Positions 4,288 through 16,206 of a stretch of DNA of 64,000 nucleotides are shown here, piece by piece (position 1 is the first letter of the stretch; every line of letters starts with the position of its first letter). The stretch is taken from positions 186,001 through 250,000 of the forward strand of contig JALMLS010000027.1 of assembly GCA_038496445.1 (NCBI GenBank). The letters are read 5' to 3'. The position numbers were made by a program, and so were the translations under genes. This stretch comes from Trichosphaerium sp. ATCC 40318 (taxonomy: Eukaryota > Protista > Tubulinea). The notes under the pieces were generated by a model, which saw only the letters and a list, made by a program, of their open reading frames with translations, had not been told where the DNA came from and ran no database searches.

Positions 4288-4986
4288 ATGAGTGACCAAA
4301 GATCAAAGGAAGGCGGCTTCAAATGGGCTCTACAAACTGGTACGTTATTTCTAGAGCAATTTTTAGTTTAGTCGTTTAACGTTTCTTGTAGGAGATTTGA
4401 CTAGCGTAAAGGATTTCATAGAGAAACAAGGGTGTCCTGTTGATGAGGCTGACGCTACAGTACAACAACGTCAACCTATTGTCTACGCTGCGGACTATGG
4501 TCAAGGCACGCGTTATTTACACCTACATAATCATTATTAATTTGAAAACCTCTAATGACATGAAATACTGACGCCAAACTAGTCGAAATCGTTAAATACC
4601 TCATCTCAAAGGGCGCTAATGTACTATAAAGCAACAAAATAATATTTTCAAACGCTAAAATGACACAAAGGTAAACTCTAAGGATAAGTTCGGTATTACG
4701 CCGCTCCTCGCTGCTACATACGAAGGTATGCCACACGGAACACATTGTTACTTCTCCGCTTCTCTGACTATTTCCTTTAGGTCACTTTGAAGTTGTAAAG
4801 TACCTTGTAAGCGTAGGTGCTGACCTAAAGGCCAAAGGACCAGATGGTACTACCGCAAAAGAAGCCGCTGAAAAAAGCGTACGTGTTTTTTAATGTTTCA
4901 CAACGCCAGAATTCATTTTCTATTAGGAAATCAAAGCTTTTTTGAAGAAGGCAAAGCAAGTAAAGGTAAAGGTTAGTGTAGAGTGA
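4288..4986 (+). CDS. MTPN: Myotrophin / V-1 (ankyrin-repeat capping-protein inhibitor)
   Basis: FKWALQTGDLTSVKDF...PIVYAADYGQVEIVKYLISKGAN...DKFGITPLLAATYEGH...KGPDGTTAKEAAE aligns along the full length of myotrophin. Confidence 0.93.
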
Positions 4987-5278: not shown

Positions 5279-8200
5279 ATGAGCGTGTCCTCCTACCTCT
5301 CTACGCTGTCTGAGAACTGTAAGTGTTCACCAAGAGAGCCAACAGTGCAAACACCTATTGGATGCGTGTCAACTACCGTTGATGTAAAGGCAAATGACAC
5401 TATATTACGCAAAGAGCCTCTCTTTGCGCTCTCTACTTATTCAGGTACATTTCTCGGTTCAGTATTTTTTACTAACCTTTTAAGTACCCGAGTACGCGTT
5501 ATTAGAGGCTGAGGCGCTGTCTGGCGTCTTTTTTCAGCAATCAACGCAAACGCCAGACTCTGTTTTTCAAACCTTGTTTACAAGCTTTAAAACCAAGCTC
5601 GGCAATAAAATAGACCTTCTCGACGAGTTTTTAGAGGATTCGTACTCGCTCACTGTCATAATCTTAACTTCTTGGCTTATTCTAAACAAAGATGTGCCGT
5701 CATTCTTATTGGCACTTTCTCAAGTATGGTTTTTTTCTGGATGCGTCACGGTTGGTTCTCTTATTAAAACTAGAAAGTCACAGATGAAGAGACCGCACCC
5801 ATGAGCTCAGAAGATGAGGAGTTGTGGTCTTTTTTAACAAGCGCACTGCCAGAAATACAATCTTTATTTTCAAAAGCAAAATACACAAATTTTCTGTCTC
5901 TAATTGCTCGTTGTATTCTACCACTTGATGTCGAAGTTGAAGGCGATGAACCGGAGACTGAGGAAACAATTCAAGAGGAGGTTGATAGCGAAGACGCAGA
6001 TGTATATGATAGTGAAGAAGAAGAAGAAGATGATGGCGTTGTAACTTTAGGTGAGACTGAGAACTCGTTCTTGTTTAATTCTTATTTTTTTTTTTAAAGG
6101 TTACGGGTTTTTTCAGATGCCTTGTGTTTTAAATCATAGCTGCGAACCTAATTCGACAATGAGCGCTTCAGAGGTACACTGAATATGTAGAACAAGATGA
6201 TAACAGCGTTGATGCTAAACATATCCTGCATGCTTTAACAGAAGAAATATAGGTTGATGGAAGATTCTTACTTCAATTGACGGCTTTGAAAGACTTGAAA
6301 AAAGAGGATACGCTCACTATATCACTACTAAATGAAGAGGAACTTAATATGCGCATGGAAGATCGCCATGATATGCTAGGATTTGCATGCAACTGCAACA
6401 GGTAGAACAATTTTTATGGTATTGGAATCATACACAAACTTTTTTAAAGGTGTATTTCGGAGAACGTAGTAGACAACCTATGGCATTTTGAAATGCTACA
6501 TGATAAAGAGCGTAATGAAGCGTATAAAAAAGCTCTTGACACGGTCGTAAAACCACAAGACATCGTACTTGACATAGGTAAGAGTAGAGAAAGCTGTTCT
6601 TCAAAAAATTGACAACAACCTGAAGGTACTGGTAGTGGTCTGCTTGCAATGATGGCTGCTTCTGCAGGTGCAAAAAAAGTTGTTGGTTGCGAGATGAATA
6701 GTGCAATCGCAACCATTGCTTCTGATGTAGTTAAGCAAAACAACTTTGAAAATATTGTCCAAGTTGTACCGAAAGCTTCCCATGATATTGAGGTACATGC
6801 CCTAATTTCTACATAAACCTCTTTTTTAAAATAAATTCTAGATAGACCCTAAAACGGCTGTTGTTGTTACAGAAACTATGGATGCAGCGCTCATTGGTGA
6901 AGGAATATTGCCTTCGTTAAAGGTAGACACCTTTTTTTTGTTGAAGCACGCTTCTAATACTTTACAGCATGCGGTTGATACTATTGCATCTGACGATGTA
7001 CAAATAATACCATGTGGTGCAAAAGGTATTAATCTTATAGCTTGAGGTGTCTTAGCTTTATTCAACTAATAACAAAATAGTTTTTGCAACACTTGGTTCA
7101 AGTGAGATTTTAACGAAAATGTCCACTCAGCCTCCTTCAAGCTTAGCTTGTCCTCTTCAAATATCCTCTGAAGGGGAATACATCCATGTTAGACATATAC
7201 CAGACTTAGTTTATCTGACAGACCCAACACCAGCCTTTGAAGTAAGTTCAACAGCATATATTAATGAGCTTTCTTTAATGCACGTCTTGTAGTTTGATTT
7301 TAAAGCTATACAACTTGAAGGCTCTGCAAATTTGAATCTAGCTATTAAACAACCTGGTATGCTCCTTTTTCCTTCTGTAATACTGAAGTGTAATCTATTC
7401 ACTAGGTTCTATTAGCGCTGTTATTGTTTGGTGGGAAACATATCTAACTGCTGATAAAGACGTCATTATCTCCTCTGATCCATCTCAAACTGTTAATGCG
7501 CATCAACATTGGACACAAGCAGTTTATTTCTTACCAGAGAAACGTTGTGTTGATAAAGGAGATAATGTTGAGATAACTGCAATACATACTTCAACATCCC
7601 TTAAGTTTTTCTTTAAAGATACAAAACCTGTGTCTCGTGGCTTGTCATGTTCTCCTTATAGACTATGGATGCTTAATGATAATTTTTATACTGAAAATTA
7701 CCGCAAGGTACGTGGTTAGCGGACAAACAAGCAAGTTAAGCGTATTTAACTCTTCAACAAGGCAATTGAAAGCAGTTCTTCGAAAAATGTTATCTCAATA
7801 GATGGTGGTTGTGGAATGCTACCAAGCATGATCTTAGGAAGCGATACAGTAAGTGCAAGTATAAATGTTTAAGCGTTAAGGCTTTGATATTTAGGAATGC
7901 AATGTGCTTGACATTGAATGGAAAGACGAAATAGCAGCTGCTTTAAGAGAACATTTCAAAGCTGTTAAAAATATGACCATTGTTGCTTCTCAAGGCGATA
8001 TTAATCTGGATACTGTTGCAAGTGTATCAGATACTGTTGCATCTATTATAGGAGAACCTCATTTTGCTGAAGCGCTTGGTACAGTGTGGCAAAAGTCTCA
8101 TGTATTGCTATACTTCTGGTCAGTATACAAACTAAAAAAATTACTTGGAGATAAGTTAGACAGTACAAAAACTATGCCTCAGGAAGCTCACTTGATGGGC

Positions 8201-8724
8201 CAACCTGTTTGCTTTGAAACGTTAGCAAAACAATCATCACTTGTATCAAATGTCTGTGGTTATAACTTGGAGGCTTTCAACACTCTAAGAAATGAGAATC
8301 GCATAGGTACCTTTTATTGGACTGAAAATTCTGAAAAGAATTTCGTACCTGCTCTTACCTTTTTTTTTCATTAGGAAGTTACTTTGTGTGGCAGTATCCG
8401 TTTGTACAATGTGGATCTCCTAAGCGACTAGGAACAATATCTTTCTTATTCAAGGAAGATACAGAGCTAGAGAGTAATATACAACTAAGTGGTGAATTCA
8501 ACACTGAGCAAGAAGGAACTTGCAATGGTTTCATTTTTTGGTTTGACTTCACTTTGGCACCTAATGTATACTTGACACGTGATCCACAAAAGCCTTCACC
8601 AAAGCCATATGGTGTATTCTTTTTAAAACAAGATATTCAACTTGAAAAAAATGATGTCTTGTCATTTAGCGCTATTTTAGAGCTACTTTCTGGTGACTTG
8701 ACTTTTATAAATGTAAATAAGTAA
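5279..8724 (+). CDS. SET/post-SET domain fused to a PRMT7-like tandem arginine methyltransferase
   Basis: SET motifs GYGFFQMPCVLNHSCEPN, LTALKDLKKEDTLTISL and GFACNCNR|C, then WHFEMLHDKERNEAY, VLDIGTGSGLLAMMAA, VTETMDAALIGEG, HQHWTQ; second module IIGEPHF...LLYFW and FIFWFDF. Confidence 0.88.
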
Positions 8725-10513: not shown

Positions 10514-12948
10514 CTAGGAAAACTGCTGACCAATTGGTTTTCCTTCATCATATGTGGCATTATTCACATCTTCATCAGTGACGGTCTTAAGGTTACTCCA
10601 CATAAACTTCTCATCAAACCACGCTCCAAGTTTGGCATAGTCTGTTTTTTGTGCATACGCCATAGGTACTTTGAAATAAGGGAGTAAATTATCCCAATTC
10701 ATACTAAGTTTCTTTTGGGCAGCAGAACTACGTTGTGGATCTGTAACCCAATCAATTTGTTCGAATGGTTCAACAAAACACTCGATACGAGCTTGTCTTG
10801 GCAGTGTCAAGTATGCATACATCTTGACAAGGGATACGAGATCATGCCATGGTCGTGGAGTAAAGTTGACATCACGTTTGTACTCCAGGCACAATTTTGA
10901 AGGTGCAAACAGAACGTTGCCTTGGAACAGAACTTCCACGCCTTTTTTGGCAGCACATGCCCAGTCAATAATATACAACTCATTTTCAAACCATATCACG
11001 TTTGTAAGTGAGATATCCCTGAAAGAGAAAAAAGAGTTAATAAGAGCATAATAAGTTCAAGAAAAGAAAAAAAGAAGAAAAAAAACCCACGTGAATGAGC
11101 ATACCTGTGTACAAATCCTAAATTGTGTGCAACCTTTAGTGTCTTAACAAGAGATGAAAATGAGCACACAAGTCCTGTAATAGAAAATTCATCTGCACTC
11201 AGCACTTGACCCACGGGTTCAGATACGAAAAATATTTTGTTAGGGTTCTGGTAACAACATCAGTACAAACAAGAAAGAAGGAAAAGAAAGAAAAAAACCA
11301 AAACGTACTTGTCTTCTAGGTTTCCACGATGTACATGCTACTGTTGGAACATGAGCATCCTCACACGGATTTAGCTTATTGAGTACGTCCACTTCATGTT
11401 TCGCCTCCTCCAGGAATTGTGGAAGGAGATGTTTTACAGCATAAGTCTTATCATCTGCTCGGACCTGGTAGACAGATGCTGATGCACCTTTACCAAGAAT
11501 ATTCGTTGCTGCATAGTAAGTTCCACCAATTTTAAACTGAGGTACGGTCCATCCAAGTTGCTCAGGAGAGCATGCCATGAGTTGGTTGATCATCTTTGCG
11601 CCCTCAGAGTCTTTACCGACAAAATCATATACTTCTGTAAAATAGAATTTATCGCCTTTTGCAGTTATGCCGTCCCACTCCATACGCAAGAACTGGACGT
11701 ATTTTTCATTTGAAATAACTGCTGTCACTGATGTACGTGTTGGTTGAGCAGCCACAAGGCGAATACAATACATCCTAGAAACTATGTTAACAACATACGC
11801 AAAAGAAAAAGCAAAAAAGTCACACATGCAGAGCACGAAAAAGAGATAAGATGTCATACATTATTTGTCCAAGTTTTGCTGGTTCAAAACCTTTAGATTG
11901 TCCCACAACCAACTTCACCTCCCATGGTACTATAATCTGATACGATGTTGGCAATGTAATACCAAGGTTTCTAGGTGCCAGAAGAATGTCTGGTTTAGCA
12001 AAACCGTGCGTAGATGTTTTTGGAAATGTGTGGTTACTTTTGGTGTCAAAAGCCATCATGTAATCAGACGTATTCCCCTTGTTCAACAGTTCAACAGTTT
12101 TCTCGGTGAGGTAGTCTTCCTTTTGTTGCCAGGTTTTCTTTGGTTTATCTGTGGTTTTTGTGGCTGTTCGTTGCTTGAGCATCTTTGCAAACACGTTTTT
12201 AGGCAGTCCGCGAAAATACTTTAAACATGAACCGTCGAACCATGACTTCTCCTTGAATAGTATATCTCCAAGGTCGTCGAATTTACTGTACAGTTCTGAG
12301 TACTCTAAAATAAAAGTGTCATTTGAATACACGTGTTATCACAAAAAAAAGAGTGGTAAAAAAACTGAGCGTACTCAATATTGAGAGAGAATGGAGGTGG
12401 TCCTTTCGCAGTCTTATCAATGCAATTGCAGTGCCATGTTCTTTTAGTAGTGCGTCCCTTTCAGCATCTTTCGCGTCTCTTTCAGCATCTCTTGCATCTC
12501 TTTCAGCATCTCTTTGAGCATCTTTCGCTTTCAATTTTCGAATCTCGCTCATAATAATTTCACGTTGTGCATCTTTTGCATCTCTTGCTGCATCTTTCGC
12601 TTTCAATTTTCGAATCTCGCTCATAATAATTTCATCCATACTCCTTTCTTGTTCACAACCCTCATCATATGGTATTGAACCAGTTGAGCTTCCACTATAT
12701 TTATTTGACAGACCTACGCGTGTGGTAGGACTAGTTGGCCTCAAGGTCTTTGGTGTGTGCGTAATACGGCGTTTAGTTGGACAAGTTCGTTTTATTTTGA
12801 TGATTCGGCGGCCTTTGTTTGCCAAATGTAGGGCAGGTGTTTTGGTTGCGTTTTTTTGCTTTTTGGTGAGCCTGTCGGTATTTAGTGGCGCTTTTGGGGC
12901 TTTGCGCTTGTTTGACGCTTTCTTGCGAGTTTCTCTGAGTTTGGACAT
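10514..12948 (-). CDS. REase-like + FunK1/Crinkler-type protein kinase, copy A (short basic header)
   Basis: Multi-exon: basic header, DAERDA coiled coil, KPDI...WEVK...GQIM|MY...QPTR, then kinase LGKGASASVY, YAVK, FVHR|DISLTN, IIDWACA, WHDLVSL. Confidence 0.8.
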
Positions 12949-13348: not shown

Positions 13349-16206
13349 CTAGGAAAACTGCTGACCAATTGGTTTTCCTTCATCATATGTTACATTATTC
13401 ACGTATTCATCAGTGACGGTCTTAATATTACTCCACGTAAACTTCTCATCAAACCATGCTCCAAGTTTGGCATAGTCTGTTTTTTGTGCATACGCCATAG
13501 GCACTTTGAAATGAGGGAGTAAATTATCCCAATTAATACTGATTTTCTTTTGGGCAGCAGAACTACGTTGTGGATCTGTAACCCAATCAATTTGTTCAAA
13601 TGGTTCAATAAAACACTCAATACGAGCTTGCCTTGGCAGTGTCAAGTATGCATACATCTTGACAAGGGATACAAGATCATGCCATGGTCGTGGAGTAAAT
13701 TTGACATCACGTTTGTACTCCAGACACAATTTTGAAGGTGCAAACAGAACGTTGCCTTGGAACAGAACTTCCACACCTTTTTTAGCAGCACATGCCCAGT
13801 CAATAATATACAACTCATTTTCAAACCATATCACGTTTGTAAGTGAGATATCCCTGAAAGAGAAAAAGAGTTAATTAAGAGGACATAATAAGTTCAAGAA
13901 AAGAAAAACCCACGTGAATGAGCATACCTGTGTACAAATCCTAAATTGTGTGCAACCTTTAGTGTCTTAACAAGAGATGAAAATGAGCACACAAGGCCTG
14001 TAATAGAGAATTCATCTGCGCTCAGCACTTGACCCACGGGTTCAGATACGAAAAATATTTTGCCAGGGTTCTGGTAACAACGTCAGTACAAACAAGTAGA
14101 AAAAAGTAAAGAATAAAAAACCAAAACGTACTTGTCTTCCAGGTTTCCAAGAGGTACGTGTTACTGTTGGAACATGAGCATCTTCATATGGATTTAGCTT
14201 ATTGAGTACGTCCACTTCATGTTTCGCCTCCTCCAGGAATTGTGGAAGGAGATGTTTTACAGCATAAGTCTTATCATCTGCTCGGACCTGGTAGACAGAT
14301 GCTGATGCACCTTTACCAAGAATATTCGTTGCTGCATAGTAAGTTCCACCAATTTTAAACTGAGGTACGGTCCATCCAAGTTGCTCAGGAGAGCATGCCA
14401 TGAGTTGGTTGATCATCTTTGCACCCTCAGAGTTTTTACCAACAAAGTCATAGACTTTTGTAAAATAGAATTTATCGCCTTTTGCAGTTATGCCGTCCCA
14501 CTCCATACGCAAGAACTGGACGTATTTCTCATTTGAAATAACTGCTGTTACTGATGTACGTGTTGGCTGAGCAGCCATGACACGAATACAATACATCCTA
14601 GAACTATGTTAACAATGCACGCAAAAGAGAAGAAAAAACAAGTCCGTACATTATTTGTCCGAGTTTTGCTGGTTCAAAACCTTTGGATTGTCCCACAACC
14701 AACTTCACCTCCCATGGTACTATAATCTGATACGATGTTGGCAACGTAATACCAAGGTTTCTAGGTGCCAGAAGAATGTCTGGTTTGGCAAAACCGTGCG
14801 TAGATGTTTTTGGAAATGTGTGGTTACTTTTGGCATCAAAAGCCATCATGTAATCAGACGTATTACCCTTGTTCAACAGTTCAACAGTTTTCTCAGTGAG
14901 GTAGTCTTCCTTTTGTTGCCAGGTTTTCTTTGGTTTATCTGTGGTTTTTGTGGCTGTTCGTTGCTTGAGCATCTTTGCGAACACGTTTTTAGGCAGTCCG
15001 CGAAAATACTTCAAACATGAACCGTCGAACCATGAGTTCTCCTTGAATAGTATATCTCCAAGGGCGTCAAATTTACTGTACAGTTCTGAGTACTCTAAAA
15101 TTAAAGTGTGAGTGTCATTTGAATACACGTGAAAAGAGTGGTAAAAAACTGAGCGTACTCAATATTGAGAGAGAATGGAGGTGGTCCTTTCGCAGTCTTA
15201 TCAATGCAATTGCATATTCATTTGATTTAGCCAGCGCCTTTGTAGCACGCATATCAGCATCTCTTTCAGCATCTCTAATATCTCTTTGAGCATCTTTCGC
15301 TTTCAATTTTCGAATCTCGCTCATAAGAATTGCATTCACGCTCTTTTCTTGTTCATAACCCTCATTTGTGACGACCACCTGTCGAAGGCGCTTAGATTTG
15401 GTAGTTTCTGGAGAATCAGATGCGTTGTATGATATTGAATCAGTTGAGCTTCCACTTGACCGCCTACTGACAGATATGTTCAGTGGAGATGCGGGTGCGA
15501 TTGGACCAGTGGATCTCGAGGCTTTTTGTTCGCTTGTGGCACGTGTAGAAGAGCCTGGAGTCTTACGAGTTCGTTTTATTTTGATGATTCGGCGACATTT
15601 GCGCCTTTTTTTTACTTTACCGGCAAGAGCTTGGGAAGTTGGGGTTGATCCCTTGGTTACTCTTGGTCGAATAGCCGGTTTGGGTACTACAGCGCATTGA
15701 TTAGAAGGCAACACAAACAAGTAATTCAAGGTATTTTTTTTGAACCGTTTTTTAAAAATCCGCGGTAAAAAAAAAAAAGCGTACGTTTATACTTTGTTAG
15801 GAGACTAACGGCCAATTGCGCCTTTACTTTTTTACCAATTGGCACTTCAAGGCTTCTACATAGATCCTTTAATTCTGGCACCTTCAAACGCTGCAATTGG
15901 ACTAGAATAACGGTTATTGATCAATAAGTGTCATTAAACGCAAAAAAAAAAAGTACTAAAAAAGGCTACCGTACGTGTTTTAGGATGCTGTTCAATGGTA
16001 TCAACTAATTGTTGAGCGGTACGGCCTTTTGTACTCAACTTTAGAGCAGAACAAATGGCGCGCAGCTCCCTTCGCGGAAATTTAGTCATCACTGACGCCA
16101 CTGTCAAGTGCTTTTGCTTTTTTGCTGCCCTTCTGGTGGATAGTGGCGCCTTTGGAGCTTTGCGCTTATTTGACGCTTTCTTGCGACCTCCCCTCAGGTT
16201 GGACAT
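13349..16206 (-). CDS. REase-like + FunK1/Crinkler-type protein kinase, copy B (header with two SAP-like motifs)
   Basis: Near-identical to copy A downstream; extra exons RRELRAICSALKLSTKG and LQRLKVPELKDLCRSLEVPIG resemble SAP/HeH motifs. Confidence 0.8.

Follow-up and report, generated by a model that had tools for sequence, protein, structure and literature searches.

A putative fusion of a SET-like domain and a PRMT7-type arginine methyltransferase in Trichosphaerium sp. ATCC 40318

Results and discussion

A candidate SET-PRMT7 fusion gene

In a 64-kb window of contig JALMLS010000027.1 from Trichosphaerium sp. ATCC 40318, we identified a candidate gene (positions 5279-8724, forward strand) that appears to encode, in one chain, a SET-like domain followed by a PRMT7-type arginine methyltransferase. 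Here the window is the whole stretch of 64,000 nucleotides that was analyzed, and positions are counted from its first letter. Our tentative overall reading is of one gene for a 904-residue SET-PRMT7 fusion, with an active PRMT7 and a SET-like accessory domain that is mainly non-catalytic or atypical. That the SET-like part and the PRMT7 part belong to a real single fused product is, taken by itself, probable from the gene structure.

The two parts meet at intron 5 (6402-6449, forward strand), a 48-nucleotide, phase 2 intron (GTAGAA...TTTTTTAAAG) that splits the cysteine motif CxCxxC. Position 6401, the end of exon 5, is the second base of an AGG arginine codon; the missing G is the first base of exon 6 (6450), which continues with the third cysteine as its first full codon (TGT, 6451-6453) and then reads ISENVVDNLWHFEMLHDKERN. 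The series C-N-C-N-R-C is spelled only across this splice (...FACNCN(R)|C), and exon 6 (6450-6577, forward strand) runs on from the third cysteine into the start of the PRMT (NLWHFEMLHDKERN...VLDI). A preliminary description of this DNA had placed a 48-nucleotide GT-AG intron inside CxCxxC and had read the motif-completing exon directly into the PRMT start; a script rebuild of the gene reproduced both features exactly. The G+C content of intron 5 (0.25) is the lowest of the 14 introns, compared with means of 0.32 for introns and 0.39 for exons, and its TTTTTTAAAG acceptor is shared with intron 3. Its retention would lead to an immediate stop (TAG, 6403-6405), 88 nucleotides before the first ATG of exon 6.

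Exon 6 must be internal, because homology to PRMT7 precedes Met 6493, the first ATG in its frame, and from the in-frame TAA (6445-6447) up to that codon there is no ATG. The similarity to PRMT7-type proteins starts at NLWHF, upstream of Met 6493. In a PDB search, exon 6 matched the N-termini of PRMT7 and PRMT9, and metagenomic PRMT7-like loci matched it with 46-57% identity from residue 10-11 onward, again upstream of the Met.

The whole gene model comprises 15 exons on the forward strand (5279-5444, 5485-5723, 5774-6050, 6100-6173, 6253-6401, 6450-6577, 6626-6792, 6842-6922, 6968-7025, 7081-7241, 7293-7356, 7406-7707, 7762-7848, 7895-8306 and 8375-8724), with 904 codons and a terminal TAA; phases, splice sites and the translation of each exon were checked by script. 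The 2715 coding nucleotides from ATG 5279 to TAA 8724 form a stop-free frame with consistent exon phases, and ATG 5279 is the first ATG downstream of an in-frame stop. All 14 introns are of the GT...AG type, with lengths of 40-79 nucleotides (median 49).

The arginine methyltransferase half

The C-terminal ~570 residues correspond to a two-module PRMT7-type enzyme. When exons were searched one by one, Pfam detected PrmA on exon 7 (1e-5) and PRMT_C on exon 12 (1e-10) and exon 15 (2.2e-5), and tblastn placed PRMT7 proteins colinearly on the window over 6472-8673, through both modules, with no match within 5279-6401. Module 1 (all coordinates on the forward strand) contains motif I (VLDIG|TGSG, 6565-6639), interrupted by the intron at 6578-6625, a double-E loop (E-TMDAALIG-E, 6872-6901) and QHW at the position of the THW loop (7504-7512). 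These elements, VLDIGTGSGLL, VTETMDAALIGEG and QHW, align respectively to VLDIGTGTGLL of PRMT7, to VTELFDTELIGEG of the hamster and other PRMT7 proteins, and to DHW of the C. elegans, mouse and hamster enzymes. The second module (LWMLND... to the C-terminus, 7663-8721, forward strand) has a degenerate double-E region, IIGEPHFAEAL, and also aligns with hamster PRMT7. Since motif I, the double-E loop, the xHW loop and both modules align with PRMT7, the PRMT half is therefore assigned to the PRMT7 type, and by its motifs module 1 looks catalytically complete. The Pfam matches, the colinear tblastn alignment and the aligned catalytic loops thus bear out the PRMT7-like, two-module body of the preliminary description.

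A PRMT9-like identity was considered and rejected: in the PDB search exon 12 matched only the C. elegans and mouse PRMT7 structures, and PRMT9 was absent from the matches. Exon 7 scored about equally against PRMT1-type structures (33.6 bits) and PRMT7 (31.2 bits), with PRMT9 at 24.6 bits. Using exon 12 as a phmmer query against 1.84 billion representatives, we obtained 27 hits. The longer single-stretch hits that we examined, WD40 proteins aside, were two-module PRMT7 proteins of ~620-710 residues, from a spider, nematodes, a dinoflagellate, a JGI 'type III PRMT' and an MMETSP transcript. The top rows of this search were spurious WD40 repeats, multi-repeat hits to exon 12 residues 20-53 (7466-7566, ISSDPSQTVNAHQHWTQAVYF...) that outrank the true PRMT7 hits.

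At the junction, only 14 residues (CISENVVDNLWHFE) lie between the SET cysteine and MLHD, and the window protein has a protist-type WHF insertion in common with three other proteins (P0013, P0015 and P0027).

The SET-like half

The region upstream of the junction is encoded by five exons on the forward strand. Exons 1-3 (5279-6050) are presumed to encode the N-terminal SET lobe, along with a long helical and acidic insert, the acidic part lying in exon 3. Exon 4 (6100-6173) carries the SET core with NHSCEPN (6132-6152), and exon 5 (6253-6401) carries the motif-IV region EDTLTISL (6304-6327), a helix, ML-GFACNCN with cysteine codons at 6388-6390 and 6394-6396, and finally the AG of the split arginine codon. 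In a six-frame translation of the window, NHSCEPN is the sole match to the pattern NH[SAC]CxP[NSC]. The Pfam SET model gave exon 4 a score of 14.4 bits (E 0.054), compared with a cut-off of 22.4; with the exons scored singly, none reached this cut-off, and those other than exon 4 had no SET score. SET clusters accounted for 24 of the 30 hits when exon 5 was compared by ESM Atlas features.

For reference SET sequences, we scanned viral contigs for NHSC(D/E)PN and took giant-virus open reading frames (ORFs) that match Pfam SET at 1e-10 to 6e-16. Three of these (L089, L092 and L095) carry F-x-C-x-C-x-x-C ~50-75 residues past NHSC; the third cysteine has the same alignment spacing in L089 and L092, and L095 has one in its own sequence. 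The spliced GFACNCNRC of the window protein aligns with viral FNCECDKC, FECKCTKC and FDCNCSHC. Comparison of exon 5 with a viral SET alignment (A6) by hhalign gave an E-value of 2.9e-4 over 42 columns, and in shuffle tests exon 4 reached z-scores of 6-8 against four viral SET ORFs, while exon 5 reached 7.3 against L092. A SET profile built from the viral ORFs, run on 2694 six-frame fragments of the window, placed exon 4 at the top (E 0.013), followed by exon 5 (E 0.051); these hits are colinear, and the third-ranked hit had an E-value of 1.3. Because of the hhalign result, the shuffle tests and this window-wide ranking, we consider the C-terminal SET lobe and its post-SET motif to be real at the level of sequence similarity.

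Other searches of this half were negative. PDB phmmer searches with exons 1, 2, 4 and 5 gave no useful match, exon 5 found no candidates in a 5.8-billion sequence collection, and neither exon 1 nor exon 5 had a match in scans of viral sequence. Exons 1-3 contain no Cys/His cluster of a MYND finger and gave no zf-MYND Pfam hit; as this finger is missing, assignment to SMYD proper was rejected.

Two conserved tyrosines of SET proteins are leucines in the window protein, and MAFFT and hhalign agree on both. EDTLTISL aligns to GEELCNSY, with Leu (6325-6327) at the Tyr position of SET proteins, and DMLGFACNC aligns to EQYAFNCEC, with Leu (6376-6378) in place of the Tyr that precedes CxCxxC. The motif-IV Tyr is invariant in the viral alignment and is the last residue of L089 aligned to the Pfam SET model. 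We take the two replaced tyrosines to be the lysine-channel tyrosines of SMYD structures, an assumption that serves as a lead only. NHSC and the four presumed zinc ligands (the Cys of NHSC and those of CxCxxC) are retained. Because the two conserved tyrosines are leucines and the N-terminal SET lobe is undetectable, two active writers appear less likely, and the SET-like domain is more likely to be a catalytically silent or atypical accessory module than a second active writer.

Search for the architecture in other proteins

We searched for the same domain combination among ~160 sampled PRMT7 relatives, made up of the 120 best of a spider PRMT7 and 41 of a dinoflagellate PRMT7-like protein. 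PF00856 was not found in the 120 relatives of the spider protein, nor was SET found in the 41 relatives of the dinoflagellate protein, including members of 770-970 amino acids that were rescanned with Pfam. Likewise, 80 metagenomic PRMT7-like loci had no NHSCxPN motif and no tblastn match to SET exons 1-5. These negatives describe a sample and are not exhaustive: no domain-pair query was made, and length limits on the exon queries miss long proteins. In the literature we found no SET-PRMT fusion, though other fusions such as SET-JmjC are described (PMC3145265). The preliminary description had named no example of the architecture, and the sampled relatives, the metagenomic loci and the literature are all in agreement with it. 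A metagenome scan with exon 12 gave no match, and the two short fragments with the greatest similarity to this exon are on 1-kb contigs with no upstream DNA.

One protein in the relatives' precomputed Pfam annotation, P0164 (1230 amino acids, Symbiodinium sp. CCMP2456, named CPK3), carries a kinase and EF-hands together with a PRMT7-like region, and represents either a further PRMT7 fusion or the result of merged gene models.

Comparison with known systems

PRMT7 proteins of known structure (4C4A, mouse; 3WST and 3X0D, C. elegans; 4M36, T. brucei) consist, like the window protein, of two tandem modules in one chain, the first with motif I, the double-E loop and the xHW loop, and the second degenerate. 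In the window protein, however, the N-terminal 35-45 residues of PRMT7, which hold the YDY...Y helix, are replaced by a SET-like region of ~335 residues, and the PRMT part is compact, at ~570 residues compared with ~690.

On the SET side, the closest systems are the SMYD-type SET domains (SMYD1-5, yeast Set5 and Set6) and the SMYD-like giant-virus ORFs L089:443-1096, L095:909-1532 and L092:3454-4410. The window protein has their layout, with NHSCxPN, a motif-IV region ~30 residues further on, a helix, and then F-x-C-x-C-x-x-C. Unlike the SMYD proteins, it has neither the MYND finger nor the SMYD C-terminal domain, its PRMT follows immediately, its N-lobe is undetectable, and both the motif-IV Tyr and the Tyr before the cysteine motif are Leu. 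The SMYD-like ORF L092:3454-4410 (forward strand of a giant-virus contig), which has the CxCxxC motif, ends in a long basic (SKRK)n tail.

The attachment of a foreign N-terminal domain to a PRMT core at this place is also seen in PRMT9 and in metagenomic TPR-PRMT ORFs such as L009:759-2183 and L004:2586-3977 (both forward strand), in which the junction lies a few residues before xWHFxM(L/M)(N/H)D. These two ORFs, together with L003, L007, L013 and L017, are intronless and ~465-475 residues long, with TPR repeats that abut a single PRMT module (PrmA plus PRMT_C) just before xWHFxMxND; they are probably prokaryotic and share 46-57% identity with exon 6 of the window gene. They differ from the window protein in that their N-terminal part is a TPR array, a binding module and not an enzyme fold, and that the metagenomic proteins have a single PRMT module.

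Proteins with two modifying enzymes in one chain are known. METTL13 has two methyltransferase domains in one protein. Two modifying-enzyme folds are likewise joined in SET-JmjC of Phaeodactylum and JmjC-SET of Neurospora (PMC3145265). In each of these the two folds may share a substrate, but none pairs SET with a PRMT.

Proposed function and competing explanations

We propose that a two-module PRMT7-type enzyme acquired a SMYD-like SET domain without MYND, joined to it through the post-SET zinc knuckle. The fusion point would lie 14 residues before MLHD, so that the SET C-terminus would replace the usual N-terminal helix of PRMT7; a fusion at this junction has precedent, since the metagenomic TPR-PRMT ORFs join a foreign domain at the same place. 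Module 1 would actively monomethylate arginine, probably in basic substrates of the RxR type that PRMT7 uses. The SET-like domain may still fold around S-adenosylmethionine (SAM) and zinc without the usual lysine-channel tyrosines and, with the acidic insert of exon 3, could serve to recruit basic substrates or to hold them in position, or could control access to the PRMT site beside it.

Several observations weigh against this proposal. The single transcript and the single polypeptide are predictions from gene structure and splice logic. In an alignment with PRMT7 relatives, the N-terminal helix that precedes MLHD (DExYDYxQExARSxY) is missing, and its loss could impair SAM binding. Exons 1-3 have no Pfam match as SET, and neither hhalign nor BLASTP against the viral SET ORFs gave a significant result for them. 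The best exon 1 alignment, of CVSTTVDVKANDTILRKEP to CLIASKEIQKNTIIIKEKP of L089, falls at the place expected for the N-terminal SET region, but its z-score is 2.2 and 10 of 300 shuffles equalled it; ESM Atlas features of exon 1 offer a weak lead, with a SET cluster at rank 4 (score 0.82). The SET domain of the preliminary description is thus recognized in exons 4-5, through NHSCEPN, the motif-IV region and CxCxxC, while exons 1-3 went unrecognized by these tools. In addition, in-frame Met codons in exon 5 (NMRMEDRHDM) are possible starts for a PRMT-only isoform. As to conservation of the fusion, the exon 12 phmmer search of 1.84 billion representatives yielded no close relative or orthologue.

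The preliminary description had suggested a dual lysine and arginine writer. In such an enzyme SET would produce methyl-lysine and PRMT7 module 1 monomethyl-arginine on the same basic substrates, for example the K16-R17-H18-R19-K20 patch of histone H4, or RNA-binding or ribosomal proteins. The fused ORF, the PRMT catalytic loops, the SAM-binding NHSC and all four zinc ligands are as this suggestion would have them, and the long acidic insert of exon 3 would suit basic substrates. The SET side of the suggestion fares less well: Leu replaces both the Tyr at the end of the SET model and the Tyr in front of CxCxxC, the nearest approach to GxG in the N-lobe is IGC, profile searches do not detect this lobe, and Pfam SET stays below its cut-off on every exon. 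We therefore regard a true dual writer as unlikely. A particular form of it, in which an active SET domain with a leucine-lined lysine channel and the adjacent active PRMT7 mark the same segment and each may gate the other, is decidedly unlikely.

It is doubtful, too, that the locus yields two products, an mRNA for the SET part that retains intron 5 and ends at TAG 6403-6405, and a PRMT7 mRNA from an internal promoter, with the continuous model being a minor form or a prediction artefact. Such an arrangement would draw on the facts that the junction of 6401 with 6450 is predicted from sequence, that retention of intron 5 stops translation at once, that translation of PRMT7 by itself, with a normal length of N-terminal tail, could begin at the exon 5 Met codons, and that the fusion was found in no other organism among the sampled relatives and loci. 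Yet the 88 nucleotides from the TAG to the exon 6 ATG leave little space, and the ORF runs unbroken across an intron that is typical of this gene. A SET protein ending in CNCNR would lack its fourth zinc ligand, the very next residue, and the PRMT homology begins before Met 6493, in a part of exon 6 that offers no start codon. Very improbable, finally, is a decaying remnant, in which the upstream 330 codons would be a SET relic captured 5' of PRMT7, its frame persisting fortuitously or as a disordered tail. Although exons 1-3 are unrecognizable, the conserved tyrosines are lost and there are no relatives to show constraint, these 330 codons stay open over five exons with correct phases, NHSCEPN is intact, as is the complete CxCxxC zinc site, and the exon G+C content is coding-like (0.39-0.46 versus 0.32 for introns).

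Lysine and arginine methylation are carried out by unrelated enzyme folds, and cross-talk between them is usually studied between separate proteins. A SET-PRMT7 fusion, if true, would provide one polypeptide in which to ask whether both chemistries are coupled on one substrate, and in what way a SET fold may come to serve a PRMT as a regulatory or targeting module. It would also show that another domain can take the place of the N-terminal helix of PRMT7, as happens in the TPR-PRMT proteins. Should the SET half be inactive, the protein would represent a pseudo-enzyme domain recruited to another writer, which is less striking but still informative.

Other features of the window

Upstream of the fusion gene, the last exons of another forward-strand gene lie in 4800-4975 (...GADLKAKGPDGTTAKEAAEKS...) and look ankyrin-like by eye. 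The gap between the end of this gene and ATG 5279 is ~300 nucleotides, which gives an idea of local intergenic spacing. Elsewhere in the window, two nearly identical ORFs of 161 residues (10514-10999 and 13349-13834, both reverse strand) are ~2.8 kb apart. Near this pair, a further reverse-strand ORF (11240-11857) contains GKGASASVY...AVKHL, which resembles a kinase N-lobe; together, the pair and this ORF may represent a tandemly duplicated kinase-like gene.

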